Positions 5,588-60,115 of a stretch of 64,000 nt of DNA are shown here, piece by piece. The DNA lies in assembly GCA_973895155.1 (NCBI GenBank), contig OZ316897.1:3115416-3179415 (forward strand), in the 5' to 3' direction. The translations under genes and the position numbers were made by a program. Source of the stretch: Marsupella aquatica. Taxonomy: Eukaryota > Plantae > Marchantiophyta. Numbering within the stretch: the stretch's first letter is position 1; each line of letters starts with the position of its first letter. Below the pieces are notes generated by a model that saw nothing but the letters and a program-made list of their open reading frames with translations, was not told the DNA's origin and searched no databases.

Positions 5588-6494
5588 CTTCACTCTAGAT
5601 ATGACTTAGACTTTAACTTTCACCTTTACTTTGCACTTATATGATTGCACTTATATGATTGGAATAGTCTGCTAACGGAATTTTTGGTGAGCATATCTAG
5701 ACAACAATTGCAACGCGAAGGAGGATATGCATGGTTTGGATGCAGGGTATTTCCCAACATTCTCCCGGTAATTCATTGTTTGATAACAAAGAAGTAGGTA
5801 TTCCGGCCATCTTGGGGTAATGCACCCAAATTACCTGCTGAAGCCCACAGGTACCAGGGTATATCACACTCTGAGTATTTTGACCTCTCCCCTACGTGTC
5901 GCCGGGGAATTTAGCTACGTACAACCACCCACTTGTGAAGGGGTATTGTTGGGCTATTCTGACGGATGGCTCCAATTGCAAGCATGCAGGTGTAGGCTGT
6001 GGCGTCCGTGGAACACAGTGATGGACCAAACGAGAAGTATGACCACCAAACGAGAAGTGTGTTTTTGATTTCGCAAAAAATGGCGAAAAATCACTAAAAT
6101 TAAGATCAAAAACGCTATTTTGAGGATGAATCCAAAATTGCATCCAACTGTTAGATATTGCTCTAGTCTTGTGACTCATGAGCTAACCACAGTTAGTCTA
6201 ACTCTGGTTAGGACTTCGCTAATGTTAGCGGTAGTGCTGATGTGCATATAGCCAGGGCTGATGCTAGACCCTGGTGGAACTTAGGCTCATTGTTACGGAG
6301 CTGGTTGAGAGATAGGGAGAGCTTGTGTTGTGGATGCTTGGTATGGCCGGTCGGCCTAGAGTGCAGTAAAGCTCTTGTGTGTTCCAGTGGACGTAGCCTC
6401 ATGTAGAGGTGAACCACGTATCTCTCTGTGTCGACTCTTGTGCGTTGGATGGTTCATGGGCTTGCCGTTGCGAATGTCGTCTATGCTCAACAAG

Positions 6495-6506
6495 TGGTAT
6501 CAGAGC
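6495..6506 (+). promoter_or_regulatory. Primer-binding site (initiator tRNA-Met)
   Basis: TGGTATCAGAGC 2 nt after the 5' LTR. Confidence 0.9.
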
Positions 6507-8156
6507 ATGCCTGGGAGGTGACAAGGTTTTTTTGTGACGGGTTTTTCCAGCGTTCATTGTTGATGGTATATTTGGAGTTTCATCGCATGAAACTCGAATG
6601 TGTGTGGCTGTGCGGATAGGTTAGTGAGAGGGCATTCTAACGGTGGTTAGAACTCACTGATTGGTATCCGTGGTGCAGAGGAATTGAAGTTTGCGTTGTT
6701 CAGGTTTTAGTCGTGTTCGACGGCTTTTCGGGGGAGGGACCAGAGATCGCGTTTTTCAACGGTGTGAGCTGTGCGGTGCGGGAGGGATCGCACATTATAG
6801 CTCAAGTTGAAGGTTGAAGCGAGCTGGTCGTTTCGGTAGCTAGATTGTTGTTGAGTTGTTACCGAGTGCGACGTGACGAGTGAAGGAGGCATTCAGGTTT
6901 TTTCACAAGCTATGGAGTTTGTTCTCATCTGAACCGGGTTTCTCTTCGTGACGTCCGCCTCGGTGGAAGAAACGCGAAGTGCTACGGCTCAACGGTTTGA
7001 TCGCGGCGAGGCGGTCGTTTTGAGTCCGGGATTGGTACTTGACGCGGAGTGAAGGCGTCGCGGCATAAGTTTTTACAGTGCTGGAGTTGCAGACGGCACC
7101 GATGTGATTCGGCAACATATCCCGTCAGTAACTCATTGTTTTCTCACTGGAAACGGCGGCGAGGTGTGTAACCCGGGGTTTGTTTTTGCTTTGGGTGCCA
7201 AATTTGTTTTTTAGGTCTTATAGGGGTTTAACCCCTTGTGTGTGCTTATACACACATTTGTGTGTGTATTGTGTGTATAAACACACGTTTTTCCCCCTCC
7301 CGGCTCCCCTCTACTCCCTCCTGCATACGTACGCGCGCGGCCGTGCACCCCTGCGCAGCGCCGGCCGGCGCATTTTCTGCCGCCCGGCTACTTCCTGACG
7401 GCCCCCTGCCTCGCCCCCCCTGCAACCCTCGCGCCTCCCGTCGGCCTCCCCCGGCCCGGCCCTCCACGCTTGCCCGACGCCCCTCCCGCTGCTTTGGTAT
7501 CCTGACTGCCTGCCTCGCGAGTCACGGCAGCGACTCATTTTTCACCCCGGCCCGGCCCTGCAACTATATGCGGTTGCGTACACAGCCGCTTGTAATCCAT
7601 CCGTGTACCCGCGCCTGGCCCATCTCGCGTATTTTCATTTAGGGGCCTTTAAGCCCCCTTTAAGGCCAATTTCTGGTCTTTTTCTTGCCGGCTCTTCTAT
7701 TGGCTGTCCCGGGACCGGTGACCCTCTGTTTTAACCGTTTCGACAAGGGGAACGGCCCCCTGTGAGACCTGCTGTATTGTGCGGAATATTCCCAAAAAAC
7801 AGAGAGCTGTTTTTTGGCCGTCCGACAAAGATTCCATCCGCCGAACGGTAACTTTTTTGGTTCTTTTTGGGCGAGGACGTTGCCATTGGAGTTAGCAATG
7901 CGGCGCACCGATCACATCGCAATTCCGACGACGGGTTGTACTTGGGATTTCGGTTATTCTCCAAGGTGGTCAAAACGGGGGAGATTCCCAAGGTTTTACC
8001 CACCCCGACCGAAATTTGAATAACTTTCCCGTCAAATTTTGATTTTGATTTCGGCTTTCAGTATTGGACTCCTAGCTTCGTGGGCTACGCGGCGGTGTTG
8101 AGTTTTGAGTTTTATGAGAAGTTTTGAAAAAAGATGTTTTTTCATGATTGTTTCAT

Positions 8157-11100
8157 ATGAGTGACTCGGAGGATACTGGAAGAATTGGCGTCGGTGGAGC
8201 TTCAGGATCGCGACGGTCAGACGGAGAGTCTGAGGAGGAGCTGCTACTATTTGAGGAAGAACTAGTGACACCGGTACGATCACAGGTGCGGCATGCAGTA
8301 GAGGAAGCTGTGTTACTACCAGAGCTATCGGTGGTTGGAAAGAAGAGGGAGATGGCTAGATTTGGAGCCTAGGTAAAGTTTGAGGTGAAGAAGTACGATG
8401 GTCGTACTGATTACTTCCTCTGGGAGAAGCAAGTGAAGGGTGTTCTACGGGCCATGGGCTTAGCTCATCTACTTTCATCGCGAGAGTAGTATGATGGAGA
8501 GGAGGAGATTTATGTGAGACAATGGAGACAGGAGCAGGTGATTGCTGTCAATGCAATGATGCTATATCTCAAGCCACACATCATCAAGCAGCTCGATGAT
8601 TATGCGGATTGTGCGTCACTGTCCCTACTGCCTCTGCTAACGCAGCATCGAGCTCGCATGAGGTAGATTTACTCGATGACGATGACATATTGTGATGTCA
8701 AGGTTATGCTCTCAACGTAGTGTCAAATCCAGATAGTGATGATTGGATTCTAGATAGTGCATGTACTTTTCATATTTGCTCTAGAAGAGATTGTTTCAGT
8801 TCTTATACGGTTTCCAACGGGTCAGTGTTGATGGGAAGTGGAATCCCATGTCAAGTTGTTGGACTTGGATCTGTAAGATTTCAGATGTTTGATGGTGCTG
8901 TGAGAACATTGAGGAATGTGAGACATATTCCCAGCATGATGAAAAATCTCATTTCACTTGGAGTTTTAGAGGCAAATGGCCATCAATGGAGTTTTGCTAA
9001 TGGTGTCCTTCAGGTTTCAACTGGTACTAGAGTTGTCTTGAAGGGAAAGAGACATTGCAATCTATACGTTTTGGAGGGCAGTGTAGTCTGTGATCAAGCC
9101 AATGTAACCTTATCTCATGAGGAGACGGCCCGGCTGTGAGTGAAAAAGGTTAGGTTATTCTTCATTTGCAATCTTGTAAGTTGGAATTTTGTGAGCACTG
9201 TGTGCCCCGGGTATGCAACTCCCCTTTTTATAAGGCAAGTTTTTAATTCCTTATAATGGCCTTATATCCAATTGACCATCTTAGATTTCATTTTAGTCTA
9301 CTAAAGTCTTGTACCTCTGAACTCAAGGAATCCAAAAATGTAACTTAAAAAAAAAACCAAACATGTTTTGATGTACAAAAAGTTGATCAAAACCAAATTA
9401 TATGGGTTTTTTTTAATACAGGGGTCTACAACCAAACTATCCAGCTTTTTAGGATTTTATTAAAATTTTAAAAATCTTTTAATAAAAATTACAACATGTA
9501 TAGGAATATTTTTTAATTTCATATGGAAAATGAAGGAAACCAAACCTTTTATATGACTTGAAAATTTTTAAAAGTGGGAAACCCAGGTTTTTTCAAATTT
9601 TAATTATTTTGTATAGCCAACTTTTTAGTCCATATAAAAATGTATACCCCTATCTATTATATAAGAGTTGCGTACCCGGGCTGTGTGCTAGGGAAGCAGC
9701 ACAGGAAACCCTTCGGAGTTGGAACTCACACCAACAAGGAGGTACTTGAGTATGTACATAGTGATGTGTGGGGTCCAGCCCCTACTCCCTCACATTCTGG
9801 ACGGTTATACTATGTCACGTTCATAGACGATTACTCAAGGTATGTGTGGATATACTTTCCACACCATAAGTCTGATGTTTTTGTCACTTTTAAGGAGTGG
9901 AAAGCCCAATTTGAGAATCAGACTGGTAAAAAGGTGAGATATCTTCGATCGGATAACGGCGGTGAATACAGTTCCAGGGAATTTGGAACGTATTGTAAGG
10001 AGCAGGGGATTACCCGCCATCTCACAACAAGTTATACTCCTCAGCAGAATGGTGTTTCTGAGAGTCTCAACCGAACACTATTGGACCGCTCGAGGAGTAT
10101 GTTGAGTCAATCATGCTTACCACATGAGTTTTGGGCTGAAGCTGTCAACACTGCAGCTTATTTGGTAAATTTTTCTCCATCCAGTTCTATTGGATTCAAG
10201 ATGCCATTTGAAATGAGGTACAGGCGTCCAGCAGATTACTCACATCTGAGGATTTTTGGATGTGTTGCTTATGTGCTTACACCTTCCCAGCTTCGATCCA
10301 AGCTGGAGTCCAAGTCGAAGAAGTGTATTTTCCTTGCCTATCAGAAAGGTGTGAAGGGTTATAGGTTATGGGATCCAGTAACCTGTAAACTAATTGTCAG
10401 TAGAGATGTGTCCTTTAATGAATCCAGATCATCAAAGGAGGGGGAGAGTTCTCAAGACTCCCATACTGACAAGGGGAAATCTCCCATCCCGGACCGGGTT
10501 GAGGGGGAGATTAGTCATGATGCAATTCATGACAGGAGAGATGGAGAAGCTCCAGGCTTGGAGCTGGTTCCTGTGATGGAACAAGAGGAGAAAATTGTTA
10601 CTAGGGTACCTCAACTTCAACCAGCAGCAGCAACAGATCAGCCTGAGTCATCTACTAGTAAGAAGAACTTCTAGTCGTTCTACTAGAGCTCCTATCAGGT
10701 ATGGTCAATGGGCAGACTCATCTAAGCTAGATGATATTGACATTGCACCTGATGAAGATGATATGGCTTTGATCTTGGATGAAGGAGAGCCTTCTTCGTA
10801 TAGTGAGGCTTGTGCTTCAGAGCACAAGCATGAGTGGAATGCAGCAATGCAGAGGGAGTTGCAATCTTTGAGTGACAACAAGACATGGGAGCTGGTGGAG
10901 CTTCCAAGAGGTCAGCAAGTGGTGGATAGCAAGTGGATTTACAAGTTGAAGGATAGTCCTTCAGAGGGTGGAGACAAGATCTACAAGGCAAGGCTTGTTG
11001 CCAAGGGATTCACTCAGGAGAAAGGAGTGGATTACAATAAGGTCTTTTCATCGGTGGCTAAGTATTCCACAATTCGGATCTTGTGTCAGCTTGTTGTATT

Positions 11101-12350
11101 TTTTGGTCTGGTGATGGATCAGATGGATGTTGTTACTGCTTTTCTCTATGGCAACTTGGAAGAGATGATCTTCATGAGACAGCCACTAGGCTTTATGAAG
11201 AAGGGCCAAGAGAACTTAGTTTGCAGATTGCTCAAGTCCTTGTATGGATTGAAGTAGTCTCCAAGACAGTGGAACAAGCGGTTTGATGATTTCATGTTTG
11301 CTCAAGGTTTTACAAGGATGGTGTACGATCCTTGTGTGTATACAAAATCAGTCAAGAATGATGTATTTGGTTTCGTCATTCTGGTAATCTATGTGGATGA
11401 CATGCTGATTGTGGCTAAAGATCAATCTGAGGTTGACAGTCTCAAGGCGAAATTGAGTGTTGAATTCAGGATGAAGGATCTTGGTAAGGCCAAGAGGATC
11501 TTAGGGATGGAGATTTTTAGGAACTCTGAGACTGGACAGTTGTGCTTGAGTCAAGGCCAATATGCGAGGAAAGTACTTGCACGATTCAACATGGAGAACT
11601 GTAAGCCAGTGAGTATTCCTTTAGCTTCACATTTCAAGTTATCATCTGCTTTCTCTCCTACGGATGCTGTGGAGAAAGGTCTGATGGCTAAGATTCCTTA
11701 TGAGAAGGCAGTAGGCAGTCTGATTTATTTGATGACTTGTACTAGGCCTGACTTGGCCCTAGCGATGGGCAAGGTCAGCAGATTCATATCAAATCCAGGG
11801 AAGGTACATTGGGAAGCTGTGAAATGGATTCTCAGGTATGTGAAGGGAACACAGGACTATGGATTACTATTTGATAACAGATCAGATAGAACGTTAGTTG
11901 GCTATGTAGATTCTGACTATGGAGGCTGTTTGGATACAAGGAGGTCTACAACTGGGTTTGTATACACTCTTGGAGGAGGATGTATCAGTTGGAAATCTAC
12001 CTTGCAGAAGTGTATATCTCAATCTACTACGGAAGTAGAGTATGTTGCAGCAACAGAAGCAGCAAAGGAAGCAATTTGGTTGGATAAGTTGATCGCAGAG
12101 ATAGCATGGAAAAATGACTCTAAACTGTGATAGTCAAAGTGCTCTTCACTTGGCTGCTAACCAGGTGATGGATAGCAAGGTGAAGCACATTGATATCAGG
12201 TACCATTTTATCAGGCAAGCAATGTCTGATAAAACTTTTGAGCTAGTCAAGATTGATGGAAAGCTTAATCCCGCTGATGCTTTTACCAAAGTGATTCCTT
12301 TGGAGAGTTTCTCAAGACATCGTGCTACTTTGCAGGTTTTGCAGTTGTAG
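8157..12350 (+). pseudogene. copia gag-pol pseudogene
   Basis: Gag N-terminus KFEVKKYDGRTDYFLW; protease WILDSACTFHIC; integrase HSDVWGP / FIDDYSR / RSDNGGEY / TPQQNGVSE; RT YKARLVAKG / YVDDML; RNase H. Contains stops, frameshifts, a gag deletion and a MITE insertion. Confidence 0.95.
9206..9680. mobile_element. 475-bp MITE inserted in the copia integrase zinc finger
   Basis: TIR CCCGGGTA(T/C)GCAACTC; 8-bp TSD CTGTGTGC at 9198-9205 and 9681-9688; AT-rich interior. Confidence 0.93.
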
Positions 12351-13543
12351 TGCAAGTAGAGTTATTTAGCAATGTGTGACTATTTGTATATGGATTACTC
12401 ATTCCTGTTAGGCTACGACTTAGTTCTAGTTAACCCTTAGTTAACCCTTGTGGTTTTTAGGGGGAGACCTGGTTTGGTAATTGTCTAGAACTTCCCGTTG
12501 AGGAATCCATATGGTAGCATTTAGTCCAGTCCCCAAGACAAGAGTCAAGGGGGAGTTTGTTAGATATTGCTCTAGTCTTGTGACTCATGAGCTAACCACA
12601 GTTAGTCTAACTCTGGTTAGGACTTCACTAATGTTAGCGGTAGTGCTGGTGTGCATATAGCCAGGGCTGATGCTAGACCCTGGTGGAACTTAGGCTCATT
12701 GTTACGGAGCTAGTTGAGAGATAGGGAGAGCTTGTGTTGTGGATGCTTGGTATGGCCGGTCGGCCTAGAGTGCAGTAAAGCTCTTGTGTGTTCCCGTGGA
12801 CGTAGCCTCATGTAGAGGTGAACCACGTATCTCTCTGTGTCGACTCTTGTCCGTTGGATGGTTCATGGGCGCGCCGTTGCAAATGTCGTCTATGCTCAAC
12901 ACCAACATCGGATTTCAAATCGAGATACTGTCGACACAAAAACAAAGAATTGTCACAATCCAGAATTCCGATACACTTCATCTAAAAAAAGTGCAAATTC
13001 CAAAACCTAGAAAAACAATGCTTTTCACGTGATCCTTCTAAAAGCTAAATCTGAGCGTCAAACAAAATGAGTAAAACACAAGATTTCATTTTCGCCATCA
13101 AAATGGCAAACTGAAAATGGGATACGGCGTATCCCATTTCGGATTCAACCGTTGAATGTGGACGAAAACCGCACCAAATCATTCTCTTTACGCTTCCATT
13201 TAACCTTAGGTTAAAAATATTTGAATTTTAACTGCGGTAAAACCAAAAACTGCGAAAAACTGACCGCGGACTATAGTCGACCCACACAGTTAGTTCAGTT
13301 AACCCGACAACATGTCCAGAAATTTTTTAGCCCATAACGCATGATGAATACGAGATGGGATCCCATCTGGTATTCAACCTCTACATTTTGAAGTTTTTGC
13401 ATTGCATACCTTGATATTCCAGTTTGAAGACCAACTGGGATCCATGGCAACTTCCTAAAAAATCTACAATTTAAATTTCAGCATTATTTGAAAAGACAGA
13501 CTCTCACGTGAAAAAACCCTCGTATGGACCAATCAGGGAATGC

Positions 13544-13726: not shown

Positions 13727-16700
13727 ATGGCGTCTTCAAGTGATGAGTCAATTTACAGTTCAGATGCATCTTCGCCAGATGTTGTTTGAAAATTTATTCT
13801 ATCTCGTTTGATGAATGAATTACCAGCCTCACAGAGAGTAGTGCCAGAGATTTCATTTTCCTCAAAATCAGAGAAATCAGAGTCTGATTCAGAGTCTCGT
13901 AGGAGTGTTGTGGGTGCTCCGATTTCATACCATGTCTCTCCAAGTAAACCTCTTAAATGACGTCTACTTGTAAAGAAGCCTAATGTAGTTCCAACGACAG
14001 AGACGCCTGGTTCACCGCGAACCCCGACAGATCTTCAAAGACCCGGTTTTTAATGCCAAGAACAACGTTACCATGTAGGCCCGCCCAAAGATCTCCGTTG
14101 GTTTTTCTCTACTCAAATGTTGAGAAACGGTGAACGCGAATTGCCTATTTTGTCTCCTTCAGTACCAAATTCCTTGGATCAAATACGAAGTGGGATCCAT
14201 GGATCCCACTTAGTATTCCCTCGTGGTATTTTGCAGAATCCTGTGCCCGAGTCACCGGTCTTGCGGATTTCCAACCCGAGTTCCGATGGTGGAATGCAAA
14301 ATGGGATACACGGATCCCAATTCGTATTGCGCAACGGAAAATTACCAAGTCATGACGCAGAACAGCAAGTGGGAAATTTTTCACTTCGAAGTCCCGAAGG
14401 ACGAATACAAGTTGGGATCCTTGGATCCCAATCGGTATTCCCATCAATTGTTTCACCGAGTGGTACAACTAAGAACATGGGGCTTCGAAGCCCTTTGGCG
14501 AGGATGTAGTGTGAGGTTTTTGGATCTTCCATTGGACGGCAAGTGCAGAATGAAAGAGGGAAGAGATCTACTGTCCAGAAAATTCCTCGGAGATTATTGC
14601 GAAGTGAGCTGCCGGAGAGAGAGCCCAAAAATTCAAGGGTACATGCTAAATTGAAACTTGTCCAAAGATTATTCAATGGTCAAGATGAGCCCTCAAGTCA
14701 AGAAGAATCACCTAGGCTGGGATTACAGTCTCAGAGACAAGTGGGCGGTACTCCGACTGAAGATGTGAATATCATTACAAGATTTCAAACTAGAAATCTT
14801 CGAACACCTATTACATTTTCAGAAGACTCTGAAGAGAGATGAGAGGAGGTTGCAAATGACAGAGAGACTGTTGTAATCTCAAATGTTGTTGAAGAGATCC
14901 TGGGATGTGAGATTGTTCATGAAACAGTTACAGAAAATGTGGAGAGTGGAAACAACTCTATCAAAGATCTTTTTGTTTTGAATTCTAATTCACTAGAAAA
15001 TAGTGGGGGGGTAAGTTCTCCCGACACTATTTAGGATAGAGTAGAGGTGACAAGACCCAGCAAGAAAATCAGAGATCAGATGATTAGAAAAGATAGACTT
15101 ACCATTGCAAATCTAAAAAAACACAAAATTAAAGATATTTTTAAGTATCCCTGTTGTGACAAGTTTTGCTTGAGGTCTCTGGGTCTAGAGGAATGCTCAA
15201 AACAACGCAAGTATTATTTTGGTCTTAAACACTTGCAAAAAATATTTTGCTACGAGGTTGTATCATGAACAACTGTAGTACTTCTCGTCGATATAGTGTA
15301 AATGGACAACCTATATGTAGAGGAGGATTCAAGAAACTATATTCTTTAGGTAATAATAGATTGGCAACTATCCATGCAAACATGTTTACAAGGATTGAAC
15401 GAGATACCTTTTGTAAGGAAGACTCACCTTCATTTCTAAACTTGGTGGAATGGTTGAAAGATTTTTTCCAAAAAAATATGGACAGTCTTCCCCATAAAGA
15501 GATTCATCACTTGCCAGACAATTGGACAAAGCAAGAGATACATGGAATCTTTGAAGCTGAAACAATGTTGCGAGAAGAACAACAAGTTACATATTCTTAT
15601 TTTTTGCGTGTTTGGAAAAAAAAGTTTCCAAATGTACGAATTCCTAGAAGGAGTTGATTTTCTACTTGTGGTTCTTGTACTGAATTCAAGGCTCTTCGGG
15701 ACAAAGCAACAACTGAAGAGGATAAAAGTAAGTTCCACTAACTATAACCTTCAACTTTAATTTGATGACATGTACTTCAATATTTGTCAAAGTTTATCCT
15801 TAGTTATTGATTTTTAATTCATTGCTATTATATCATTTCAGGAAGGTACATCAATGCCCTTATGGAGCATCGAAAAGTACAATCATTGGAAAGGATGAAG
15901 TTAGCCAAGCATCGTAAAAAATGTTATGATGGGCCAAAAATGTTATGATGGGCCCAACAAGTATTTGGGTATTTGTATAGATGGTATGGATCAAAAGAAA
16001 ACAGAGCTACCACATTTTCTTTGTTGTCCGAAGAACATGGATGAAAAACATTTCATTCCAATACATGTTGTAGGTTGTCTCATCTTCAACAGGAACCTTG
16101 CAGCAAAAGTATTTTTGACATATCCCAATATCCATAATGATGCAAACTTGACCATACATGTTATTCAAAATGTATTGAATACATGGGAATGATGGGACAT
16201 TACCAAGAGTGTTATATCTTCAATTAGATAATACCACGTACTAGGGAAAACAAGAATAAATTCTTGATGGCTTATCTTCACATTTAGTAGATTTGAAATT
16301 TTTTGACAAGATTAAAGTGGGTTTCTTGTTGGTCAGTCATACACATGACCAGATAGATCAGATGTTTAGTAAATTTTTGTCTAGGTTAAACAAGCACAAA
16401 GCATTTCGCTTGGAGACTCTTGAGGATATTATTCGATGAGCATATTCACCTGAAGCTTTGATCATATTTGTGGATGAAGTAGCCGATTTTCAAAAATTTG
16501 TCAATGAAAACGACCAGCCAAATGAGAAGGGAGTCTCAAGTAGAGTCTTGAGAGATCTCAATCTCATAACTTTTCAAAGGCAAGTCAGATTCAAACAAGT
16601 CATGGAGGATGGAAACGAAGAGACAACATTTCACGGGAAACATCTTTCCACGACCCAGGATTGGGGAGATGCAGTGACGTTTGTCAATTACATTCCAACT

Positions 16701-17467
16701 TCAAGAATGTGGGTTGCTGCACAAATGTCACTAAAGTCAGCAAAAGGTGTTGAGAGGGATGATGTCCATGATTCTTCCAATACAGATGGTGCATTAACTA
16801 CTCTGGTGAAATATCAAAAAGCTATCCAGGAAGGTTTCAATTACTTTGACAATGAAGATAAACTTTGGTGGATGAGTTTTTTTTAGAAACAAAAAGATAT
16901 TATCAAAAACCACCTAGAGGAAGGTGAGTGGTTATTTGAGTGGGTTTGGCCGCAACAAAATCAAGGTGCACAACTACTTCCAAGGGTGAGAAATGAACTT
17001 TTTGAAGAAGGTGTTGATCCAACTTTGGTTGACAAAGTTGCTGGACCACAAAGAATTATGTACTCCGAACCTCAACGAAAGCAAGCTGAATTTGGAGATT
17101 TCAGAGATATGGAAGTTAACAATAAGTGGTCCATGATATGTGTAGCAGCACACAAGGATCCAGAAGGCAAGTTGTTTTGGATGGCAAAGGTGTCAAAGAT
17201 TTTGACAAGAACTGCAGACATTTATGAGAGAATCAAAATCACATGGTACACACTGAGGCAAGTGCTGAGTCTGCTATTGATGGGAAATATTTTCCAGAGA
17301 AAGATAATATATCTAATCGACTTCTCCAAGATGAACTAGTTCTATCATCAACAGCGGTGTATGCATACAACTTTGTGCTTTTAAGTACTAATCAAATAGC
17401 AGCAAAAACTAAAAAAATTATAGAGTCTGCTATATTAGAGCGAGGTTCCGCACACTTAGAGGATTGA
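13727..17467 (+). pseudogene. Sola-like DDD transposase (DUF7869-type core) of element A; intron 15728-15841
   Basis: CCDKFCL; CxxC (FSTCGSC); GICIDGMDQKKT; LQLDN..ENKN; SHTHDQIDQMFS. Many stops and frameshifts. Colinear with 49703-52974. Confidence 0.85.
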
Positions 17468-18012: not shown

Positions 18013-18324
18013 TCAATCCGATCCAAACATAATTATTACAACCAGACTCCAGTGCATGCTCATGTGAATTGGCATGAGAATGACCTCAATTTGGGAAAAT
18101 GGTGGCTTGTAATAATTCCGCATCTTTTGAATTGATTCCAACAAGGTCTCAGCTGGTTCTGTTTCAATCCTTGAAACAAGCCAAGGGTAAAAAAAAGAGG
18201 ACAATGTGTTTACTGAGGGAGCCAGATCTCCATGTTCCTCGGTTATTAATTGTGGGTAAAATTCCATTATTTCATCACCCAAATATTGACTGGGTTCAAG
18301 ATGGCTCAATATTTTATTGTCCAA
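18013..18324 (-). pseudogene. Ulp1/C48 SUMO-protease-like fragment
   Basis: YLGDEIMEFY...LSSFFYPWL...ILMPIHMSMHWSLVVI matches the C48 N-terminal half up to the catalytic His. Asp and Cys portions are not seen. Confidence 0.75.
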
Positions 18325-18502
18325 AAGAAACCCACTAGAAGGATTGTGTGAAAATCTATGCAGAACATGTTTTCAATCCTCTTTTGGTGCCTGCAAAGAC
18401 ATTACTTTGTGAAATAAGAACATAGTCCAATCATAATCTTCCTCAATATTGAACAAGTTTGGATCAATAGATACAACATGAGAGAACTAATCAAACTAAA
18501 GT

Positions 18503-48600: not shown

Positions 48601-49262
48601 TCACGCTCTCCGAAGATATATGAAAGGTCTTATCTATAAATCCATATTCACGTTTCGAGCCAAGTGCGATAACTGTATCGGACTCCGGATTTGAGCCACG
48701 AAAGCTCCGACCCAATCTCAGTTTTCTCAGTTTTTGGATATTTACCAAAAATATTTTACATCATAGTCGATAAGAAGTACTGCACGGTTCGTCAAACTTA
48801 CCTTGCAGTTACCTCCGCAATTGACCAGTTACCTCCGCAAGTGACCATAGTCAACATGCCATTCTTTCAACAGCAATGCGCAGTCCGATAAAATTATCGT
48901 GAAAACTACGGGCGACAAAAATACTAGTCGACAATACTAAGATCCTTCGGTTCATCGGTTAAATTTCAAAATTCCTATCTATATGAAGAAAACTCTTCGC
49001 AATACCAACATCAGATAAATTTATCCCTTCAATTTCAAAATTGCAACTTCCATATGAAGGAACCACTTTTGCAATACCAACATCAGATAAATTTATCGCT
49101 TCAATTTCAAAACTATATAATTTTGCCACGATGCACGTGTGAGAATGAAATTGGAAATCCAAGAAATATACCCTTTTCTGCTATTTTGTCGTTTAGGGTG
49201 ACAACCAATCAAAAGTGGACACGTGGGCCAACCCCTCAACAGACACTATAAAAGGGCCACCG

Positions 49263-49559
49263 CTCGGGGGTTTCACTTCCACAAAAATGGCATATCACGT
49301 GCGACGAAGGATAGGGTCATTTTATTGGTTCTAAGGGAAGACTTAAGAATTTTTGTAGAAGAACAATAGGGTCTTTTAAATTCAATTTTGAGACTTATAA
49401 GAACATTAGGGTCTTTTTAATCCATTTTTTAGAATATTCCAAGAATATTCCAACTTTATAGGGGTTAAAAAATAATTTTTTTTTCTTACATTTTAGGGGG
49501 TTCGAGGCCTAAAAACGTCGCAGGCGATAGGGAGGTCCCCATATAGTGAGACCCCTGAG
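49263..49559. mobile_element. 297-bp MITE inserted just after the TATA box of element B's transposase
   Basis: Same family as 37678-37974; 8-bp TSD GGCCACCG. Confidence 0.93.
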
Positions 49560-49702
49560 GGCCACCGCCGATAAGTTTTTGGCGTCATTATCGAGAGTAG
49601 AGTTTTGGGAGTTGTGTTCTTGGATCAACATTCTGTCCGTTGAGCCTTTCGTTTTCCCTGATTGCGGGAGGAATGCAAAGCCCCATAGTATCTCGGATAG
49701 CC

Positions 49703-52700
49703 ATGTCTCAATCAGACACAGATTCACCTTCCAGTTCAGTTGAATCCCCTCCTAATCTTGTCACTCGCTGTTTGCCAAGTCGCATACTTAAAGCTCTACC
49801 TCTCTCACAGCAAATAGTGCCCGAAATCTCTGACTCAAATTCTGATGCAAGTTCTGGTCCTGAGCCCAGTACTTACTATGTGTCGCCTAGTAAACCTGAG
49901 AAGCGTCGTCTCTTGAGCGTTCCATCGCCAAGAAATGAGAAACTTTCAATCCCAGGTTTAGGTCCGAGATGTCGCTTCAGGCCATCCATCTCGGGTTATG
50001 GAGAGGGTATCCGGCGACCGATACGCGTATTGCAGTTGGCATTCAAGTCGCCACATTCAACACAAGTTCAACGACAGATCTTTCAGTCTCCGGGTGAGGA
50101 TCGGGACACAGAAATACAAAGACCGATACGGCGATCGGTCTTTGCATTGCCTGGACTGGATGTGCGAGCAAGCGAGGAATCGGACTGCGAAGTCCAGACT
50201 CGGCCCTTTCTCGAATGGTCCATGGGAATCATGGTGAACAAGTGCTCAATTTTCCAGCAGCTCGCGGAGTCGTTGGGACTGCACGTGCGAATCCAAAATC
50301 TCCAAGTTCTCAAGGGCGGACTGTCATTGGTTCCAGGCTCCAAGTATCGAGGAGAGGTCTTAGTGGCGTTCGGGTTATGTATAGAGAGCCACGGAGTCCA
50401 ATTGTGTTTTCAGATGAGTCGAGTGCATCGGAGGACGAAGATGAGGAAGGAGATAGAGAATCCGATATAATAGCACAAGTTGTGTCTTAATGTTTAGAAG
50501 GAGCTGTCGAAGAGAATAGTTATAGTCGTCTATTCAGTGCCCCTCTAAATGCGTCAAGGAGATCTATAGAGGATGGTAGCTCAGCAGAGAGTGATGCATC
50601 TATTCGCGAGGCACCTGAAGGACCCAAAAATGCCAATGTTATGAACGGATTTCAGGCTGTAGAGAAGTCAAATGAGCCTAGTAAAAAAGATAGGGACCGA
50701 ATTACTAGGAAAGACAATGTGATAAATGACAAATTGAATAGAAACAAAATGAGAGAAATTCATAAGTATTCGTGTTGTGATAATTACTGTCTGAGGAATT
50801 TGGGTCTGCTAGCCGTGACGAAACAACGCACTTATTACTATGGGCTATCCTACCCAGAGAAGAACGTCCTTCTAAGAGGATGTGTGAAGGGTGGGCATGC
50901 TGGTGCAAGTGGTTACTCAGTTAGCGGTAGATCCTTTTGTCGGAGTGGTTTTAAGAAATTATTTTTACTAGGAAATAATCATCTCCAAAAAATCTCGCAG
51001 AACATATTTTCTTGGATACAGATCGGTACAGTTTGTCGAGAAAAATCACCCGCACATCTTGGTCTCGTCCAATGGCTGGATGATTTTTTTTCCACAAATG
51101 TCGAGAGTCTCCCCAACAAGGATATCTTTCATTTACCTGACAATTGGACAAAAACAGAAGTTTTTGATGCCTTCCAGTCCAAAACTCTAATGCGCCAAGA
51201 ACAAGGCATGACATATTCGTGGTTTGTTCGCATTTGGAACAAGGAGTTTCCTCGCGTGCGTATCCCCAAAAGGAGCCGTTTCTCCACCTACGCCCCGTGT
51301 ACTGAATTCAAAGCACTCCGTGACAAGGCAACACTCGAAGCAGAAAAAAGTAAGTTTCTAAACCTGTGTGTTACTCCCGATAATTTTATCGGGTTGAGTA
51401 TTCATGTGCTTCTTCTTTGGCCATGTGAGTGAATATATCGTTTGAACAGTTTGAATACTGAACCTGATAAATTTATCGCTGTCATAGTTTTTCATTACGG
51501 TCTTGTGTTTGAATACTGAACCCGATAAATTTATCGTTGTCAGGGTTTATCATTACGGTCTCGTGTTTGAATACTAAACCCGATAAATTTATCGCTGTCA
51601 GGGTTCAACATTGCGGTTATCATGTTTTGTCCTAAACATTTTTATTATTGTAGGAAAATTCTCAAATTGCTAAACGAGCATCGGAAGGCACAAGCAGTCG
51701 AGAGGGAGAAGTTAGCAAAGCACCGGAGCAAATGTTACAAGAGTTCGGAGAAATATTTGGGCATCTGTATTGATGGAATGGATCAAAAGAAGACAGAGTT
51801 ACCTCATTTCATTCGGTGTCCGAAGAATATGGATGAAAAGTATTTCATCCCCATACACGTAGTGGGTTGTTTGATCTTCAACAAACAATTAAGTTCAAAT
51901 GTTTTTTTAAACTATCCAAATATTCACAATGATAGCAACCTGACCATCCACGTTATCCAGCATATTCTGAATACCTGGGAAGGTCTGCTCCCTCCAGTGC
52001 TTTACCTCCAGCTTGATAACACAGCTCGGGAAAACAAGAATAAATATCTTATGGCATATTTGAATATGTTGGTGGAGATAGGTGTTTTCCAGAAAATAAA
52101 GGTTGGTTTCCTATTGGTGGGGCACACCCATGATCAAATTGATCAAATGTTTAGCAAGTTTTCTTCAAAATTGAACAAGCGGAAAGCTTTCCGGTTGGAC
52201 ACTCTTTCAGCAATCATAGAGGAATCCTACAATCCTACGGCAAAGATATTTTTCGTCGACGAGGTTGCTGATTTCAAGAAATTTGTGTCAGACAAGGATC
52301 AAGCAAATGACAAGGATATGGATGGTCAGGTTCTACGTACTCTCCACGGCATAAGTGCTCAAAAACAATTTTGGATTACTAGAGTACTCGAAGATGGAAG
52401 TGCTCGGTCCGTATTCCATGCCAAACATCTTTCAACGACAACCGATTGGGGGGAGATGGTGGATTTTGTTTGGTACATTCCATCATCTGGAATGTGGGTC
52501 GCACCACAAATGGCATTGAAGTCGGCCAAGGGAGCGATAGGAGACAATGAAGAGCAAGAGAATGATGCTGAGGAACAAGATGAGCGGGCGGCTCAAAGTT
52601 ATTTGTCAACTCTTCAAAAATATTGAAGAGCAATTGAAGATGGATTCAATTACTTTGACGACGAAGATCGTCTATGGTGGGGTCGTTTTTTTGACAAACA

Positions 52701-52974
52701 AAAAGAAGTGATTCAGCACCACCTGAAACCTGCACAATGGAGTTTTGATTGGAGTTGGCCCAAGGTAAACGTACAGAGAGAACTTCCGAGTAATCCTACG
52801 GAAGCAGCAATGGAACCTAGCTTGGTTGATAAAGTAGCAGGTGTGAGGATAGTCATGTATTCTGGAAGTCGAAGAAAAGTCACGGAAATTGGAGACTTCA
52901 AGGATCTAGAGGTGAATACTAAATTTGCAATGACAGTCCGATATATGCAAAGTCCGATAAATTTATCGCATTAA
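49703..52974 (+). pseudogene. Sola-like DDD transposase of element B; intron 51350-51653; C-terminus lost after about 52932
   Basis: GICIDGMDQKKT, LYLQLDNTARENKNKY and FLLVGHTHDQIDQMFS; intron at the same position as in A. Confidence 0.88.
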
Positions 52975-53072
52975 TAAAGGTGACAAAGGTTCTTCCTCAT
53001 GGAATACAGAATCCGATAAATTTATCGACAACTCCATTTGGTGATTGACATGATCCTAACGAGCACACGCAA

Positions 53073-56000
53073 CTAATCTAATAACATGTCGTTGAGATCA
53101 TCCTCATTTGGTGTTCTGGGAGGCTCTTCCTCAGTTTCTTCTTGTTCCTCTTCGGTCTCCTTCACGACCTCAATTACATAAGTCGATGTCCCGAGAACAC
53201 CCAATTGGCCTGCAATTGGTGGTTGAATCTCATGACCTTCAACGCCGTGCCCTTCAATCTGGGATTCTTCATATAAATTCCAATTTGACTCTAGAATCAT
53301 GATCCGGGATTTCACAAAATCAATCTGCGCAGAACTCTTATCAACAGCACAACCCTAGCGAGAATTGAGGAGCGTAGCAGCTAATGTCGATCCGGTTCCA
53401 CAACAAAGATCAATAACCCAATCCTCTTTCTCAGAGAAATGGGAAACAAACCAAGCCTCCAAACCAACAGGCTTCTAATACGGGTTCACAACAAATCCCA
53501 ACGGATCAACGGACTTCTTGGTTACACATGGAACCTTGATGATATTGACGCGAGACTCATCCGGTTAGAAATTGTACATGTCCATGTTCCGAATGCCTTC
53601 CTCGCTATAGAACCTTATCGACCAGTTCTCAAAACCCCACGCCAATCAAGCTCCAGCGGGACGCTCATGAATGTTAGTCTTCTCCCAGATTCCAGCCTCG
53701 ACCCCACAGTTGCATACACTCTCCAGTGCAGACATCACCATATGCGTTTGTTGTAGTGAATGGATCACAACAAACCTCCACTGCTTAGCGGTCATCATCT
53801 TTGAGAAACTTGTCAACATGTCTAAAATTTCCTTTTCTGTGAAGGCTACTTCATCAAACTCCAAACTAGGAGCATTAAAACCATACGGAATATCCGCAAC
53901 CGCAAGGGTGTAAGCCCTTGGCTGAACAAAAGAATCCAAAATTTGAACATCACCAACATGGAGATAGTAGGGAAAAGAATCCCCGTCTGCATTTTTCCAT
54001 GTTTGTTCAAACGCTTCTGCTATGCCCTCGCCTAAGGACCTCAGCCGATTGTACTTATCGATTGCAGCAAGCACAAAATTCTTAAACACATAAGGGATTT
54101 CAGCTGAGGGAACAATAACCTCCCCCGCAGAATTATAAGTGACAGCCGGAACCACTTTGCTTTTCCTTTTTGAATTAATCTTCAGCTGTAAAAATGTCAG
54201 ACACATCTACAGTTAGAATAGCGTGAGATGAATGCTAAAGCCGATAAAAATCTCGCGATGGAGCACGCTAGCCGATAGATGGAATCGCTTAGAAACCAAC
54301 AAAGGAATGCTAAAGCCGATAAAAATCTCACGATGGAGCACGCTAGCTGATAGATGCAATCGCTTAGAAACCAACAAAGGAATGCTAAAGCCGATAAAAA
54401 TCTCGCAATGGAGCACGCTAGCTAATAGATGCAATCGCTTAGAAACCAACAAAGGAATGCTAAAGCCGATAAAAATCTCATGATAGAGCATGCTATGAGA
54501 GGATGCTTACCGCGTCACTCAATTTCTCCGCCCATATGCCAAGGACCGAGACATCTGTTTCGTTGGGAAACATTTCTCTGCATGTTGCCCAATCTGGCTG
54601 ACCAGATATCTGCAAAAATAGTTTCTTCACCTTGGCAAGCTTTTTCAACTTCTCACCTTCCTTGTGCATTTGATCCAAACTGATCACCTTCCCGATAACC
54701 CTATTCAAGAGACGCTTGACATGCTCCTTATTTGACAGTCCTTGGAGACCTCAAAATGAATTTAAGTTGAGGTCCCCAGCAAGTTTATTCATTTTAATCT
54801 CCCTTACCGTCAAAGGTTTTACCTTTCCCTTTGCGTTCGTCGTTGCCACAATTTTTTTGGGTTGTCCTAAGACAATACCTTTCTCCCACATCTGGAAAAT
54901 CTGCTCCTGAAGATCCCAAATTTCACCTGTTCGAAAAGCAATTTGGAAAGCCGGATCATGTTTGGCCATGGAGTCACGAACTCCTGGCGTGTACTCCATC
55001 ATGCATTCTTGACAACATGCTTCGCGGACATCTTTAGTCGAGCCCACACCCATTTCAAGGAAAATATTGTGACAAGCGCGAACTTGGTCAATTTTAGTCA
55101 TGTTCTTCCGATACTCCTGGTCATAGTTATGCTGGAAGCCTAACTTTCGGACCTCGGATCTCGTAAGCCCAGCATAAACCCAAGCTTCCAGCTCACCATA
55201 TATTTGCAATCCGTACATTTTAAACAACTCGGACTTTGCCCGAGCACCATGATTCCCTCCAATAATTCTATACTTCCATACCCTTGACTTCAGGATGTCC
55301 CAATCTATGGTTGTGGGACAATCCTTTGGATCCACACACAGCACGAATGGGGCACTGAAGTTGGTGGGGTTTTTCATGAGAAGTATCTTGATATTTTCCA
55401 CATGCAATCTATCCACTGGTCTAATCAAAGTTGACAAATCCCCCTCCTCATCAAATATGAGATTGTCAACATGCAGAAGCACAGTTGTCCTTTGCACCCT
55501 TCGTTGCATCAGAAGACTGAGCTCTGCCTTGATCACGTCCGTCTCATACATTGAAAGAGCCGTCTCCTCCTCCTGATCAGCCTACAAAAGCGTTGCAAAT
55601 TCAATTAAGGAAAGAAACTGCGAGATTTTATCGGAGTTCGCATTTGTTCAACATAACTCCACAATCCGCAATTCAGGAAATAAACAGCGAGATTTTTATC
55701 GGATTTCATATTTGTTAAATAGTACAACGACGTAGTACTTACCAATGGCGCCGCAGGAACCGCGACTGGAACTGATGGAATTGACGGAGCTCTATCTACT
55801 TCTGCAGCCACCATCTTAGTCCAGCCAATCCTCTTCCTCTTTGTGCTAAGTCCAGAACCAGATGGCCCGGATCCCTCAGATCCTTTACTTTCGCTTGGTT
55901 TAACGGATGGTCCTCGATGGTTGCCCCGGCCTCTCCCACCGTCAGAGGTTCCCGCGGCATCTCCCCTGCCGCTACCTCTCCCTTTCCCTCTTCCACTTCC

Positions 56001-56682
56001 CAAAACCCGACCAGAAGTTGTAGGTTCGTCCACGTCAATATGTGTAGAGGATTGCAATGGTTCTTTCCGCCCCGACATTTTATCGGCATTAGAACCACCG
56101 CTGCCACTTGAACCTGGTTTCTTGAAAACAATTTTGCGGACAGGTTTGAACTCTTCACCCACAAGTCTCTTGTACTCTGCGTTCACCCTTGGAAGCATGA
56201 TGACATCACAATCTTGCACATACTGGCCGATCCAAGCCGAACCCATAACATTCATCTCTCTTGCTGCCCGAACTTTGGCAACAAGGGGATCTTCTGGATA
56301 ACTATCCATCGATTTCTTATCAAAGTTATCGAGAGTAACAATGAGAGATGTGAAACCCTTGCGCCCACACATTGTCAAGAAACTAAGGCCCTCTGTCAAC
56401 ACTTTTCCCTCCCCGTGGCCAACCATGAACTCGACGACGGCAACAGCAATGACAGGGCCATACGAAACATTAACCTTCGCCGATTTTTGCAATTGGACCC
56501 AAAGGATTGGGGTAGCACAATCTTCGAAACCCGTGGACTGTAATCTGGCATCACGGAAGTACCATGACTTCTTGATACACTTTACCTCTTCACAAATGTC
56601 TTCACTCGTCCAAATTGCATTGGTGAGGCTTGTCATGAGACTTTCTGCCTCAGCAGATCCACTCTTTCCACTAGCAGCCATG
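53073..56682 (-). pseudogene. ParB-like + beta-class amino-methyltransferase fusion gene of element B; introns about 55582-55740 and 54186-54510
   Basis: IRPVDRLHVENIK...YRIIGGNHGARA; AVADIPYG; NPY*KP...WVIDLCCGTG (about 53390-53480, read manually); phase-0 intron LSDA|LKIN; acidic tail. Confidence 0.87.
54230..54490. repeat. 75-bp tandem array (3+ units) with CGATAAAAATCTCG sites in the ParB-MTase intron of B
   Basis: ccgataaaaatctc at 54241, 54316, 54391 and 54466. Confidence 0.95.
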
Positions 56683-56917
56683 GCAAAGTCTGCAAATAAA
56701 CAAATTCCAATGCAAAGAGCGATAAAATTATTGCCGCCAATCTCACAACACATGTGGACACGACATCTCATCACACAAGGACAAAGAGACCCGCAATGCA
56801 AATGACCGATAAAATTATCGCAAAAGTGAGCCTTCTTTAAATTGACGGCAGAGTGTACAGGTCGAAGAATCAGCTACAGAACCCTAAATCCAAAACCTTA
56901 ACCCCTAAACCTAAACC

Positions 56918-57570
56918 CTAATCATAGTTGAACCTCACCAGAGCGAAGCGTTCGATCCGCTTCTTGGGCCATTGGGGAATATGAGTGACGCGATGATCAT
57001 AAGCCCACAGCCAATGGAAATCAACTTCACCAGTCTCAGGATTCACTACTGCTACTGAATACCGGCGTGACGGAATGTCACAACAAGCATTTGTGCAGCA
57101 TGGACAGATCTCACCATTGGCAAGGACGTTCGTCCACAGGCAACTTACATAGATCAAGTTAAAGAGCGCACAGACCGGCTGGGGGGGAGTTGACGAATCT
57201 TGTATGAATATAGTTTCCCACCAGTGTCAATAAAAAACTCGGTGGCAAGAGGATTGTCCAGCTCGTCAATCACATCCTGAATCTCATCGAATGCTCTACG
57301 TCTGTTGTCGGCATAGAATTCTGGCTCATAAGCAGGATTGCCCTTCACAACATGACAGCAGTGGAGTATAAAATGTCTTACTGCACCGGTTTTCAGAAAG
57401 AGTAGGATAACTCTTCTAGAAAATCTAACATATCTATCCCACCGAATATAAATTTCTCCCCCTACCTGATCTACGTAGAAGTGAAATGCGTTATGGTAAA
57501 ACGGTTTTACTACCAGCCTGCATATCTTTAAAATTAGTGACTCATCCAGCCTCCTTAGCTGGTCCAGCAT
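56918..57570 (-). CDS. Two small overlapping cargo ORFs of unknown function (57154-57570, 138 aa; 56918-57157, Cys-rich)
   Basis: Open, protein-like ORFs co-oriented with the cargo cluster; no recognised family. Confidence 0.4.
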
Positions 57571-57945
57571 GGCTCCATTCCCCCATTCTGGAGGATCCGG
57601 GTAGGGTACAAAAATGCGTCACTCGAGCATGGCCTGATCACCGAATAGAAATCAGGAATAAATTTTGGAGAACATACTAATTACAATTCTACAAGTTTCA
57701 TCCAACTTTACAGTACCTTGTATAATGGGCTGTGAAGCCAATGCACTTGTCAGCTAATCATCCGAAGAGGCGCAAACAAATACACTCTGGACCACACAAC
57801 CCGAAGTCAGGGGAGGCAGAGTCAATTACATTCAAAGTATTTCTTTACAAGCTCTTCTCGAGCAAACCTTAGAGCACCCAAAATCGACTAGAGGAATGAG
57901 GAGTGCGATAAATTTATCGGATGTTCGCAGCAATGCCTCATCCAC

Positions 57946-58494
57946 TCAGACTCGTCCATGCCATGCAAGAATTGTCCGCTTCCCGCTTTCTCCAAGATTT
58001 ATCCAAACTCTACGAAACTGATCTAACTGCTCATACGAAAAACACCCAAGCATATCTATGGGAGGGAGGAAATGAGTTTCCTCTCGGAAGACCCTAGCAA
58101 TATGTATGTTTGAGAGAAGGTCGGCATTAGGAATGCTTGCGAGCATTTTGTTTATGTCATTGATCTCACGAACTGCATATTTCAATAGCACCCAAAATCG
58201 TGTACCAACAACAAGATGGTTCCATTTCTTTGAGGTGGCTCCAAGACAAATGATTGTTCTCATTCGAGTCAGTCGTTCTTCTGGTAGAAGTTTTAGGTCA
58301 AGGCCAAGGTGTTCATCTTGTGTGCAAGACAAGGCTAGGAGGGGCCAAATGTGAGATTCAACGAGTTGATCGGGAAGTCCATTCAACAAACTTCCGCATT
58401 CCACATCGGGCATTTTTCCTCGAATATATTTCCTACGCTCGTGGGCTAAAACGGATCCCATCTTTGCAACGATTAGATTCTCTGATGCAGCCAT
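57946..58494 (-). CDS. F-box-like cargo protein of element B (182 aa, open)
   Basis: LLNGLPDQLVESHIWPLL...LGATSKKWNHLV...FW resembles an F-box with an insertion; conserved with element A. Confidence 0.6.
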   Translation of the reverse strand: MAASENLIVAKMGSVLAHERRKYIRGKMPDVECGSLLNGLPDQLVESHIWPLLALSCTQDEHLGLDLKLLPEERLTRMRTIICLGATSKKWNHLVVGTRFWVLLKYAVREINDINKMLASIPNADLLSNIHIARVFREETHFLPPIDMLGCFSYEQLDQFRRVWINLGESGKRTILAWHGRV

Positions 58495-58649
58495 GAAGTA
58501 GAGCTACCAAAACCACCAATAAAAATACCTTCAATCACCAGGTGTAACCAAACACATCCACAGTACCAACCCTGCATGACAGTTTAACGATTAGGACTCG
58601 TGACGTATTATATTCGCTGCGCAAGGGTAGGACTTGTTTATTTAAATAT

Positions 58650-59050
58650 GTCCTTACAAGACGCGCCTCAATGAAAAGGTCGAAACACTCATCGTGAAAG
58701 GTTCACCCAAGGGTCTTCGTTCCAAATCTTACAACAGAAGTGAGCCTGTTTGTGGTACTTGTTGTCAAGACGACGACAACAATAGTTACAAGAAAACTCC
58801 AAAGAATGTAAACACGCCGTTAACATCAACCTCGAACAAATTGGAACTCCTGCATCATTCATTCCGCAGAATTCAATGCGGAGAGATTCTGCCTATCTCC
58901 AGGATCAGTACCACCCATCCACAATGCTCCTATACCGATGGGGAGAACTTTGAGTCGCACGAGTCTCTTGTACAACCGGTGTGCACGTTTGACATGATTT
59001 TCAATGAAGACAGCCATTTGTCACAATACCTGTTGTCCACGGAGTGCAAT
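58650..59050 (-). pseudogene. ORF-X homolog in element B
   Basis: Manual translation gives HVKRAHRLYKRLVRLKVLPIGIGALWMGGTDP, versus HARRLYKRLVALKVLRPGLGALWTGGVDP in A. Confidence 0.65.
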
Positions 59051-60115
59051 CAACCTTCCGTTGTGCCTCCTAAACCCGGCAACATTGCGACATCAAAGAT
59101 GAAGATGAGTCTCCAAACAAAACAAAGGAAAATGATTCTCACAGGAGGATGCGATAAGTTTATCGCACTCCGCATTCGAATTGAAAATATGACTTCCTCA
59201 AACACCTAAGCCCTGAATTCAATCTTTCACAAAAATGACAACTCCGATAAATTTATCGGATTCTCCATTACTCCTCTTTCCATGAAAGGAATGAAGACTC
59301 CGATAAATTTATCGGAATGAAGGCAACACCTCTCTAAACACTGGATCAAATGATTGCAACAGAGGAATGCAGAATGCGATAAATTTATCGCAGTCCGCTC
59401 GGATCTGGACATTTTACACTAAATGACTAGTTAGTCTTACATGGAGAACTTGAACAGGAATGGCTGTTCCGATAAATTTATCGGGTTTTTGGTAGAAAGA
59501 GTCGAATCGCTTGGGAGGAATGTAAGACTCGATGGGAGTTTGGTATTCGCTCTCAGTCAGGAGATATTTGCTCTGGCGAAAGCAAACGTTTTATGGGCAG
59601 CCTGCTCCTCTTTATATAGGAGACGCTCTAAACCATGGTTAATTTCCCCTTAACCATGGTTAAGTTTCCCCTTTACCTGGGTTAGTGCGTGGTCATTCCT
59701 GGATTACGCGGTTCGGACCAAGTTACTCGCAGTTCAGACTTTTTCACTGACGGAATGTAAAACCCGATGCACGTATCGCTCCCTGCATTCCCGCGGCGAT
59801 GCAATGGAGGAAAGTGGCGTTTCAGAGAGTTTTTGCCAGTTTTATCGGTCATTGCATTGCCTTAGAAAAAAATGGGATCGGGCTAAACGAGAACTCCGAC
59901 ACACTTCTCGGTCGGTCCGAAATCGTGTTTAAGTAAATTAGATAATTAGATGACAAACATCCCTACGGCAGCATTTCTCGTTCACACACACACAAAAGGG
60001 GAGTCGTCACAGGCAAAAAACAGAAAACCATAGAATCTATAATTGGTACTGTGTGTGTGAATCACTCCATACCATACCATGATAAATCTCATTGTTTTAT
60101 TTAAATTAGTGAGTG

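Follow-up and report, generated by a model that had tools for sequence, protein, structure and literature searches.

The window analysed here, a stretch of 64,000 nucleotides from the liverwort Marsupella aquatica (contig OZ316897.1, positions 3,115,416 to 3,179,415), contains three decayed cut-and-paste transposons: two related Sola-like elements with a DUF7869 transposase, A and B, and one Mutator-like element, C, nested in A. Besides the transposase, A and B each carry an accessory gene for a protein with an N-terminal domain of the ParB/Srx (sulfiredoxin) fold and a helical domain, followed by a beta-class amino (N6-adenine or N4-cytosine) DNA methyltransferase. A candidate counterpart is found in C. 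Each element also contains 13-22 copies of a 13-17 bp palindrome in its non-coding DNA, in subterminal regions, in spacers between genes and in introns, including the intron between the ParB-like and methylase exons. We predict that these palindromes are read by the accessory protein, a reading that we favour over its rivals and to which we assign a probability of about one half.

The boundaries of the three elements were read from their termini and target-site duplications (TSDs). Element A (6012-35799; 11,265 bp once its two nested insertions are subtracted) has the termini AACACAGTGA..GGACCAAACGAGAAGT and is flanked by GTGG at 6008-6011 and 35800-35803. Element B (48349-59929; 11,581 bp) has the termini AACACGATTTCGGACCGA.CGAGAA and is flanked by TAAG at 48345-48348 and 59930-59933. 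Both show the 4-bp duplication and the terminal inverted repeats (25-30 bp) of Sola elements, and it is on duplications and termini that the label Sola-like rests; a literature search for DUF7869 returned no paper mentioning this domain. A and B are relatives that share their gene order and are collinear, with ~67% nucleotide identity across the coding parts. Their termini are similar although their palindromes are unrelated. Element C (23366-35135) lies inside the right subterminal palindrome cluster of A. It has GGGTAT.. termini and a 9-bp TSD, TTTGGAGGC, at 23357-23365 and 35136-35144, within the 9-11 bp range of Mutator-like elements (MULEs). Termini and duplications thus bear out the three nested, TSD-bounded elements of two transposon types described in the original prediction, which was made from the DNA letters and a list of open reading frames (ORFs).

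The palindromes are private to their elements. With at most one mismatch, GGGATAC-N3-GTATCCC occurs 13 times in A, CGATAAATTTATCG 15 times in B and AGCGCC-N-GGCGCT 19 times in C; with two mismatches the counts are 13, 18 and 22. These counts partly fall short of the 15-25 copies per element first proposed, but they are far above chance, dinucleotide shuffles giving 0-0.01 expected copies per palindrome. At the stricter threshold every copy sits within its own element's DNA, and at two mismatches one of the 22 C copies falls in the DNA of A. Half-sites are 10-30 times denser inside their own element than elsewhere in the window. As predicted, the motifs switch at the nesting boundaries, and they do so exactly where A and C join: the A sites 23223 and 23311 give way to C sites, after which A resumes with a site at 35180. 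Moreover, when the window was scanned without bias for exact palindromes that have 6-nt arms and recur at least four times, the A, B and C families alone emerged, and no recurrent palindrome came from the Copia retrotransposon inserted in A, from the flanks or from the 12.5 kb separating A and B.

Most copies are internal rather than terminal, and over half are kilobases away from the ends. The A sites (span 13119-35634) are located at 13119, at 19711-20266 (seven copies), at 23223 and 23311, and at 35180, 35268 and 35618. Those of B lie at 48886 and 49085, 51378-51594 (four), 52955 and 53014, 56807, 57906 and 59152-59483 (five). In A and B, the last ~800 bp before the right end, upstream of the accessory gene, contain about five sites, and one or two lie near the left end. 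The C sites lie at 23852 and 23971, 25652-25834 (three), 28130-28476 (five), 29617, 31024-31122 (three), 33152 and 33976-34558 (four); the five at 28130-28476 occupy the spacer separating the divergent transposase and accessory genes. Both A and B carry an array in the intron between the ParB-like and methylase exons, made in B of degenerate half-sites. A 40-bp satellite occupies ~1 kb in two blocks at 43262-44262. Its unit holds the imperfect palindrome ATGGTGC-N5-GCACCAT, which is limited to the array and not dispersed, and no ParB-like gene is close by.

The original prediction had called for a fold check with AlphaFold and Foldseek, and this supported a ParB/Srx fold for the A/B protein. 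An HMMER scan of 1.84 billion representative sequences yielded 137 relatives, of which 23 were aligned for an AlphaFold2 model of the 266-aa ORF of B (mean predicted local distance difference test, pLDDT, 83). All top Foldseek matches of the model were ParB, Noc, KorB, PadC or Srx. Structural alignment with VIA gave Z 11.8 and a root-mean-square deviation (rmsd) of 2.0 Å over 95 residues with Myxococcus xanthus ParB bound to CDP (7bnk), and Z 11.7 with the CTP-gamma-S-bound Q52A mutant of the same protein (7bnr), covering residues 22-150. Foldseek alignments to Noc and ParB extended over 200-235 columns with high rmsd. On the strength of this model, the ParB/Srx fold of the N-terminal domain is confirmed.

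The second half of the accessory protein is a methylase. In the window exons, PF01555 (N6_N4_Mtase) scored 22.4 and 21.9 bits (E 1.4e-4 and 1.9e-4), below the curated cut-off of 26.7, which the full-length homologues from Chara, Riccia and a JGI contig exceed (39.9 bits; best E 7.6e-18). The motifs of A and B follow the beta-class order, with ADIPYGF (motif IV) upstream of NPYQKP..DLCAGSG (motifs X and I, the latter being the FxGxG motif for S-adenosylmethionine, AdoMet). Of 12 aligned homologue segments, ranging from Chara to liverworts, eight have D-[IFLAV]-P-Y-G as motif IV; compared with the canonical beta-class [DNS]-P-P-[YFW], this form retains the D and the Y but has another residue for the first P. 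The N6-adenine methylases Erm and KsgA use N-[IL]-P-Y at this position. Among solved structures, a DpnA-type adenine methylase (5hek) and CcrM come nearest, and a similar methylase is present in 301 phage records at 24-29% identity. The accessory gene is of bacterial or phage type. Because the D-x-P-Y-G catalytic motif and the AdoMet motif are kept across the family, intact copies of the A/B type are probably active enzymes.

In both A and B the transposase is encoded on the plus strand and the accessory gene on the minus strand. The transposase remnant of A (14117-16886) matches the DUF7869 gene of B over 15449-16747. The ParB-like exon of A (20329-22068) is a 579-aa ORF with GGNHGARA at ~21132 and its homologous part at 21333-20440. 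It is separated from the methylase exons (18503-19676; ADIPYGF and NPYQKP..DLCAGSG) by an intron with a tandem array of 6.5 x 90 bp holding seven palindromes (19701-20284). The methylase contains a 1-nt frameshift at 18978/18979, whose extra base is missing from most other genomic copies. Directly downstream lies an Ulp1/C48 protease exon on the same strand (18013-18324; Pfam E 1.4e-8). B has no counterpart of this exon, which may belong to the accessory gene as an optional addition or may have been captured separately. In B, the transposase ORFs span 49640-52626, with DUF7869 at 51622-52626 (E 5e-50). The ParB-like domain, whose ORF was folded, and its helical continuation lie at 54496-55551 with an in-frame stop at 54751-54753, the array (3.5 x 75 bp, degenerate half-sites) at 54230-54495 between the two sets of exons, and the methylase part (ADIPYGF; NPY*KP..DLCCGTG; two in-frame stops) at 53232-54206. 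The accessory proteins of A and B are 54% identical.

Exons and ORF pieces were searched singly and stop-separated pieces apart. Full-length homologues align collinearly over the exon pieces: GBG86584 of Chara braunii, KAL3696720 of Riccia sorocarpa and an intronless 789-aa protein of a JGI contig. The ParB-like and methylase exons therefore belong to one gene, since they map collinearly on single natural proteins. Contigs assembled from sequencing reads covering the locus are short pieces of what is apparently a high-copy DNA repeat family; their visible joints fall within the tandem array and are uninformative on splicing. A further ORF between A and B, at 37993-38229, was considered as ParB-like and discarded (E 0.37 against the ParB hidden Markov model, HMM).

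In element C, the transposase ORFs lie on the minus strand at 24206-27883. They have no Pfam match, neither a MULE nor a SWIM domain being detected on C. However, 23 of the 30 language-model neighbours of the DDE-like ORF are MULE clusters (score 0.93), and a CxC..CxH motif can be seen by eye at 24206-24409. The 9-bp duplication, the language-model neighbours and the CxC..CxH motif point to Mutator. The accessory gene runs on the plus strand. Its candidate ParB-like exon (28974-29531; YGNHR) has an in-frame stop at 29226-29228; in each of two related contigs (L002 and L003), the two resulting ORF pieces align to a single ORF that contains DGNHR. A conserved middle region follows at 29546-30813 (46% identity to protein P0139), and then a degenerate methylase-like part at 31297-32639, with DWTVGSGSS as a marginal motif I (PF01555 E 1.9e-4; 5e-5 in L002). 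The motif IV position reads YLPK in C itself and YLPK or SLPN among C-type genes, which leaves no catalytic D..Y, and judged by these residues the C-type methylase is probably inactive. Homologue searches with the C exon, P0139 and the C transposase ORF returned fragments without names or domains only.

Relatives in other genomes repeat the association with varying completeness. At a locus of Riccia sorocarpa (L005; CM100795.1) a DUF7869 gene adjoins a ParB-methylase gene, and 11 copies of TGTATGC-N2-GCATACA are present, four of which are arrayed in the intron that separates the ParB from the methylase exons. This element is adjoined at 18074-22076 of the same locus by a second DUF7869 element, which has nine copies of its own palindrome, TCCATGA-N3-TCATGGA; the sequence covered ends before any accessory gene that this second element may have. 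In the C-type contig L003, GCTAACGG-N2-CCGTTAGC occurs eight times, within the accessory gene and around it. A JGI metagenome contig has DUF7869 beside a ParB-methylase gene, yet no recurrent palindrome. Private palindromes that keep their positions while their sequence turns over are thus a recurrent, not a universal, trait. The Chara braunii protein GBG86584 (P0004, 1825 aa) consists of two tandem ParB-methylase units (ParB ~97-290 and 1063-1377; methylase ~365-543 and 1460-1710), which stem either from a duplication or from an annotation that fused two elements.

We propose that the accessory protein would bind the palindromes of its own family as a dimer. The bound protein would then act in cis on the element, through methylation and/or through regulation or protection from silencing, and site and protein would co-evolve so that each family recognises itself only. 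Four features favour the accessory protein as the reader: the termini of A and B are similar but their palindromes unrelated, the majority of sites lie at a distance from the ends, distant relatives have an array within the accessory gene itself, and the dyad symmetry suits a dimeric reader, whether ParB-like or methylase.

Several results weigh against this reading. The arginine-rich CTP box of ParB, GERRxRA, is not kept; GGNH-x-A-x-A with an invariant H101 stands in its place, the two being equated in position from the strand-helix junction of the AlphaFold2 model. A GGNH-type box with an invariant His instead of GERRxRA occurs in sulfiredoxin-like members of the fold. Because of this replacement by GGNH(G)ARA, a CTP clamp that would load and spread is speculative. 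The helical part (residues 150-231) gave no clear helix-turn-helix (HTH) match (best Z ≤3.4), Pfam detected ParB neither in the window ORFs nor in 45 homologues, of which one had a weak DUF6551 match, and searches of the PDB with the ParB-like domain, by phmmer and by profile, returned nothing relevant. The accessory genes are disrupted in the A, B and C copies, which are pseudogenes, and no sequencing run listed with the locus is recorded as RNA. The locus of a full-length homologue, L006, contains no recurring palindrome. Finally, the AlphaFold2 model of the C-type domain (pLDDT 47) is too poor for a fold search, and hhalign aligned the C type with the A/B family at the GNH motif weakly (P 0.0037, probability 9%). 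Of 143 A/B-family proteins, the C-type HMM matches 10 at E<0.03, in nine cases at the GNH motif, and the A/B-family HMM gives the C exon E 9. The ParB likeness of the C-type protein is suggestive, weak but consistent. The spliced ParB-like and methyltransferase gene originally attributed to every element is thus recovered in A and B, with the fold and a beta-class methylase, whereas in C the ParB link is weak and the catalytic D..Y is missing.

A reader other than the accessory protein has to be considered. Repeated subterminal motifs are classic binding sites of transposases or TnpA-type proteins, as known in Ac/Ds, En/Spm and Mutator, and the palindromes of each element do form clusters within ~350-800 bp of both ends. 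They could be transposase sites, subterminal and internal enhancer-like, that define the mobilised family, the ParB-methylase acting without reading them, for example as a general anti-silencing DNA modifier. The presence of palindromes in the transposase-gene introns of C and of Riccia is in keeping with this, as is L006, which has the gene without the palindrome. However, the terminal inverted repeats of A and B are similar and their palindromes are not, so that recognition of the ends and recognition of the palindromes evolve separately. The sites lying kilobases from the ends also argue against a transposase reader, as do the arrays that lie between the ParB and methylase exons in A, in the Riccia element and, as degenerate half-sites, in B. 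In L003, moreover, the eight sites surround the accessory gene alone. We consider a transposase reader rather doubtful, though it is the strongest of the competing explanations.

The ParB-like protein could instead bind the palindromes as an architectural cofactor, bridging or condensing the ends like TnpA of En/Spm, or as an autoregulator like KorB on RK2, with a methylase that is secondary or dead. DNA bridging is a property of ParB-family proteins, and on RK2 KorB controls promoters through palindromic operators (PMC11790492). Five sites lie between the divergent genes of C and five upstream of the accessory gene in A and in B, and the C-type methylase lacks the catalytic D..Y. Yet the D-x-P-Y-G and AdoMet motifs are kept over the distance from Chara to liverworts, which argues for an enzymatic role, and there is no evidence of end synapsis; we regard a purely structural or regulatory role as unlikely. 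It is very improbable that the palindromes bind no protein, being hairpin satellites spread by slippage or unequal exchange, or sources of small RNAs, that accompany the gene by an accident of descent. Many copies do belong to tandem arrays (periods of 43-90 bp), and the satellite at 43262-44262 places an imperfect palindrome outside the elements. But copies are also dispersed singly over 10 kb with the core palindrome kept and the flanks varying, A, B, C, two Riccia elements and L003 all show the pattern with sequences that differ, and no other repeat class in the window behaves in this way.

The accessory protein thus remains the favoured reader of the palindromes. A more far-reaching proposal would be that land-plant transposons encode a ParB-derived, nucleoside triphosphate-dependent module that loads on private palindromes and writes N6-methyladenine (6mA) or N4-methylcytosine (4mC) on its own element, with rapidly co-evolving pairs of protein and site, acquisition by at least two superfamilies and a non-catalytic reader in the MULE lineage. 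We hold this complete scheme to be possible but on balance improbable. If the protein does read its own palindromes and methylates or shields the element, these transposons would own a sequence-specific epigenetic self-recognition of bacterial origin. This would be a counterpart to VANC anti-silencing and could supply plant genomes with 6mA or 4mC. The streptophyte and liverwort copies form natural matched sets for a specificity swap, with the A and B proteins, their unrelated palindromes and a distant third type, and liverworts are genetically tractable. The genes also matter for annotation: in Chara and Riccia they are labelled as host genes, 'DNA methylase N-4/N-6 domain-containing' or 'hypothetical'.

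Other repeats of the window complete the description. The Copia long terminal repeat (LTR) retrotransposon in A (6149-12901, plus strand; TSD CCAAC) has LTRs at 6149-6492 and 12558-12901 that are 98% alike, and carries no palindromes. A partial second copy of the same family at 569-1615 is 94-97% identical to its internal and 3' part (11312-12648). A 2.5 x 145-bp tandem repeat (35801-36171) begins at the right end of A, just past the TSD. Two copies, 97% alike, of a 297-bp miniature inverted-repeat transposable element (MITE) are found at 49263-49559 in B and at 37678-37974 between A and B, with termini CTCGGGGGT.TCAC / GTGAGACCCC.GAG and 8-bp duplications GGCCACCG and CACTGTGC. The 11,585-bp spacing from 37678 to 49263 was considered as a tandem copy of B and rejected, as it corresponds to the two MITE insertions. 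Additional small non-autonomous elements may account for two pairs of inverted repeats (88 nt, 84%; 70 nt, 90%) and a tandem repeat of 3.8 x 144 bp to the right of B (60128-60702, 61333-62869 and 61672-62215).

Among known systems, the ParB-parS, Noc-NBS and KorB-OB (on RK2; PMC11790492) pairs resemble A and B in the fold of the N-terminal domain (Z 9.5-11.8) and in palindromic sites dispersed over a replicon or mobile element. Unlike these bacterial clamps, the A/B protein has GGNHGARA for GERRxRA, no recognisable HTH or C-terminal dimerisation domain and no ParA partner; it is fused to a methylase and its gene is interrupted by spliceosomal introns. The VANC anti-silencing proteins of Arabidopsis VANDAL MULEs (Hosaka et al. 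2017; PMC5735166) are likewise transposon-encoded accessory proteins with family-specific short motifs, often tandem, in non-coding DNA, which differ between related families, as in A, B and C. However, VANC is neither a ParB nor a methylase, its motifs are not palindromes and it causes loss of methylation; its likeness to A and B is one of layout alone. We regard VANC and KorB as functional analogies only. Similar in domain content are the ParB-HTH-methylase fusions of chlorophytes, the phage and plasmid fusions of ParB-like domains with N6_N4 methylases, and the ParB-Tls locus methylases described by Iyer et al. in 2016 (PMC4738411). The phage and plasmid proteins join the same two domain families, but the ParB part of A and B has no detectable phage similarity, and the genes are eukaryotic, with introns and low-complexity basic or Ser-Pro-rich N-terminal stretches, and reside on DDE transposons.

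The nearest precedents are algal. In red-algal Plavaka elements, Petroll et al. 2025 (bioRxiv 10.1101/2025.02.11.637652) described PAG2, a PF01555 methylase with a SET domain, and PAG3, a ParB-like domain with a 2-oxoglutarate oxygenase; the accessory genes adjoin inverted-repeat arrays and move among Plavaka, Zisupton, Mutator and Fanzor elements. The ParB-like domain of PAG3 has 7BNR as its best HHpred match, the structure that ranks second here in a tie (Z 11.7, against 11.8 for 7BNK), and tandem inverted-repeat arrays beside the gene and spread over unrelated superfamilies are also shared. In Plavaka, however, ParB is fused to the oxygenase and the methylase is a separate gene, whereas A and B unite ParB and methylase in one gene and have palindromes dispersed over the whole element as well as arrayed. 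In the brown alga Ectocarpus, Sola1-1_Ec32 encodes, opposite the transposase, a 1104-aa protein with a ParB-like domain and an N4C/N6A methylase (Dinatale et al., Genome Biol 2025; PMC12477816). Compared by description, this protein and those of A and B agree in having the ParB-like domain followed by a PF01555-type methylase, in residing on a Sola-type element and in being encoded on the strand opposite the transposase; they differ in host, a brown alga against a streptophyte land plant, and PMC12477816 mentions no palindromes. Both 2025 studies propose self-binding and self-modification. The 'candidate new system' of the original prediction does not hold in that form, ParB-methyltransferase accessory genes and the self-binding hypothesis having been published for algae in these studies and related fusions earlier (PMC4738411). 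Our literature searches for liverwort or land-plant reports found none. The concept is not new, and the elements of Marsupella aquatica are a streptophyte instance of the recently described algal kind.

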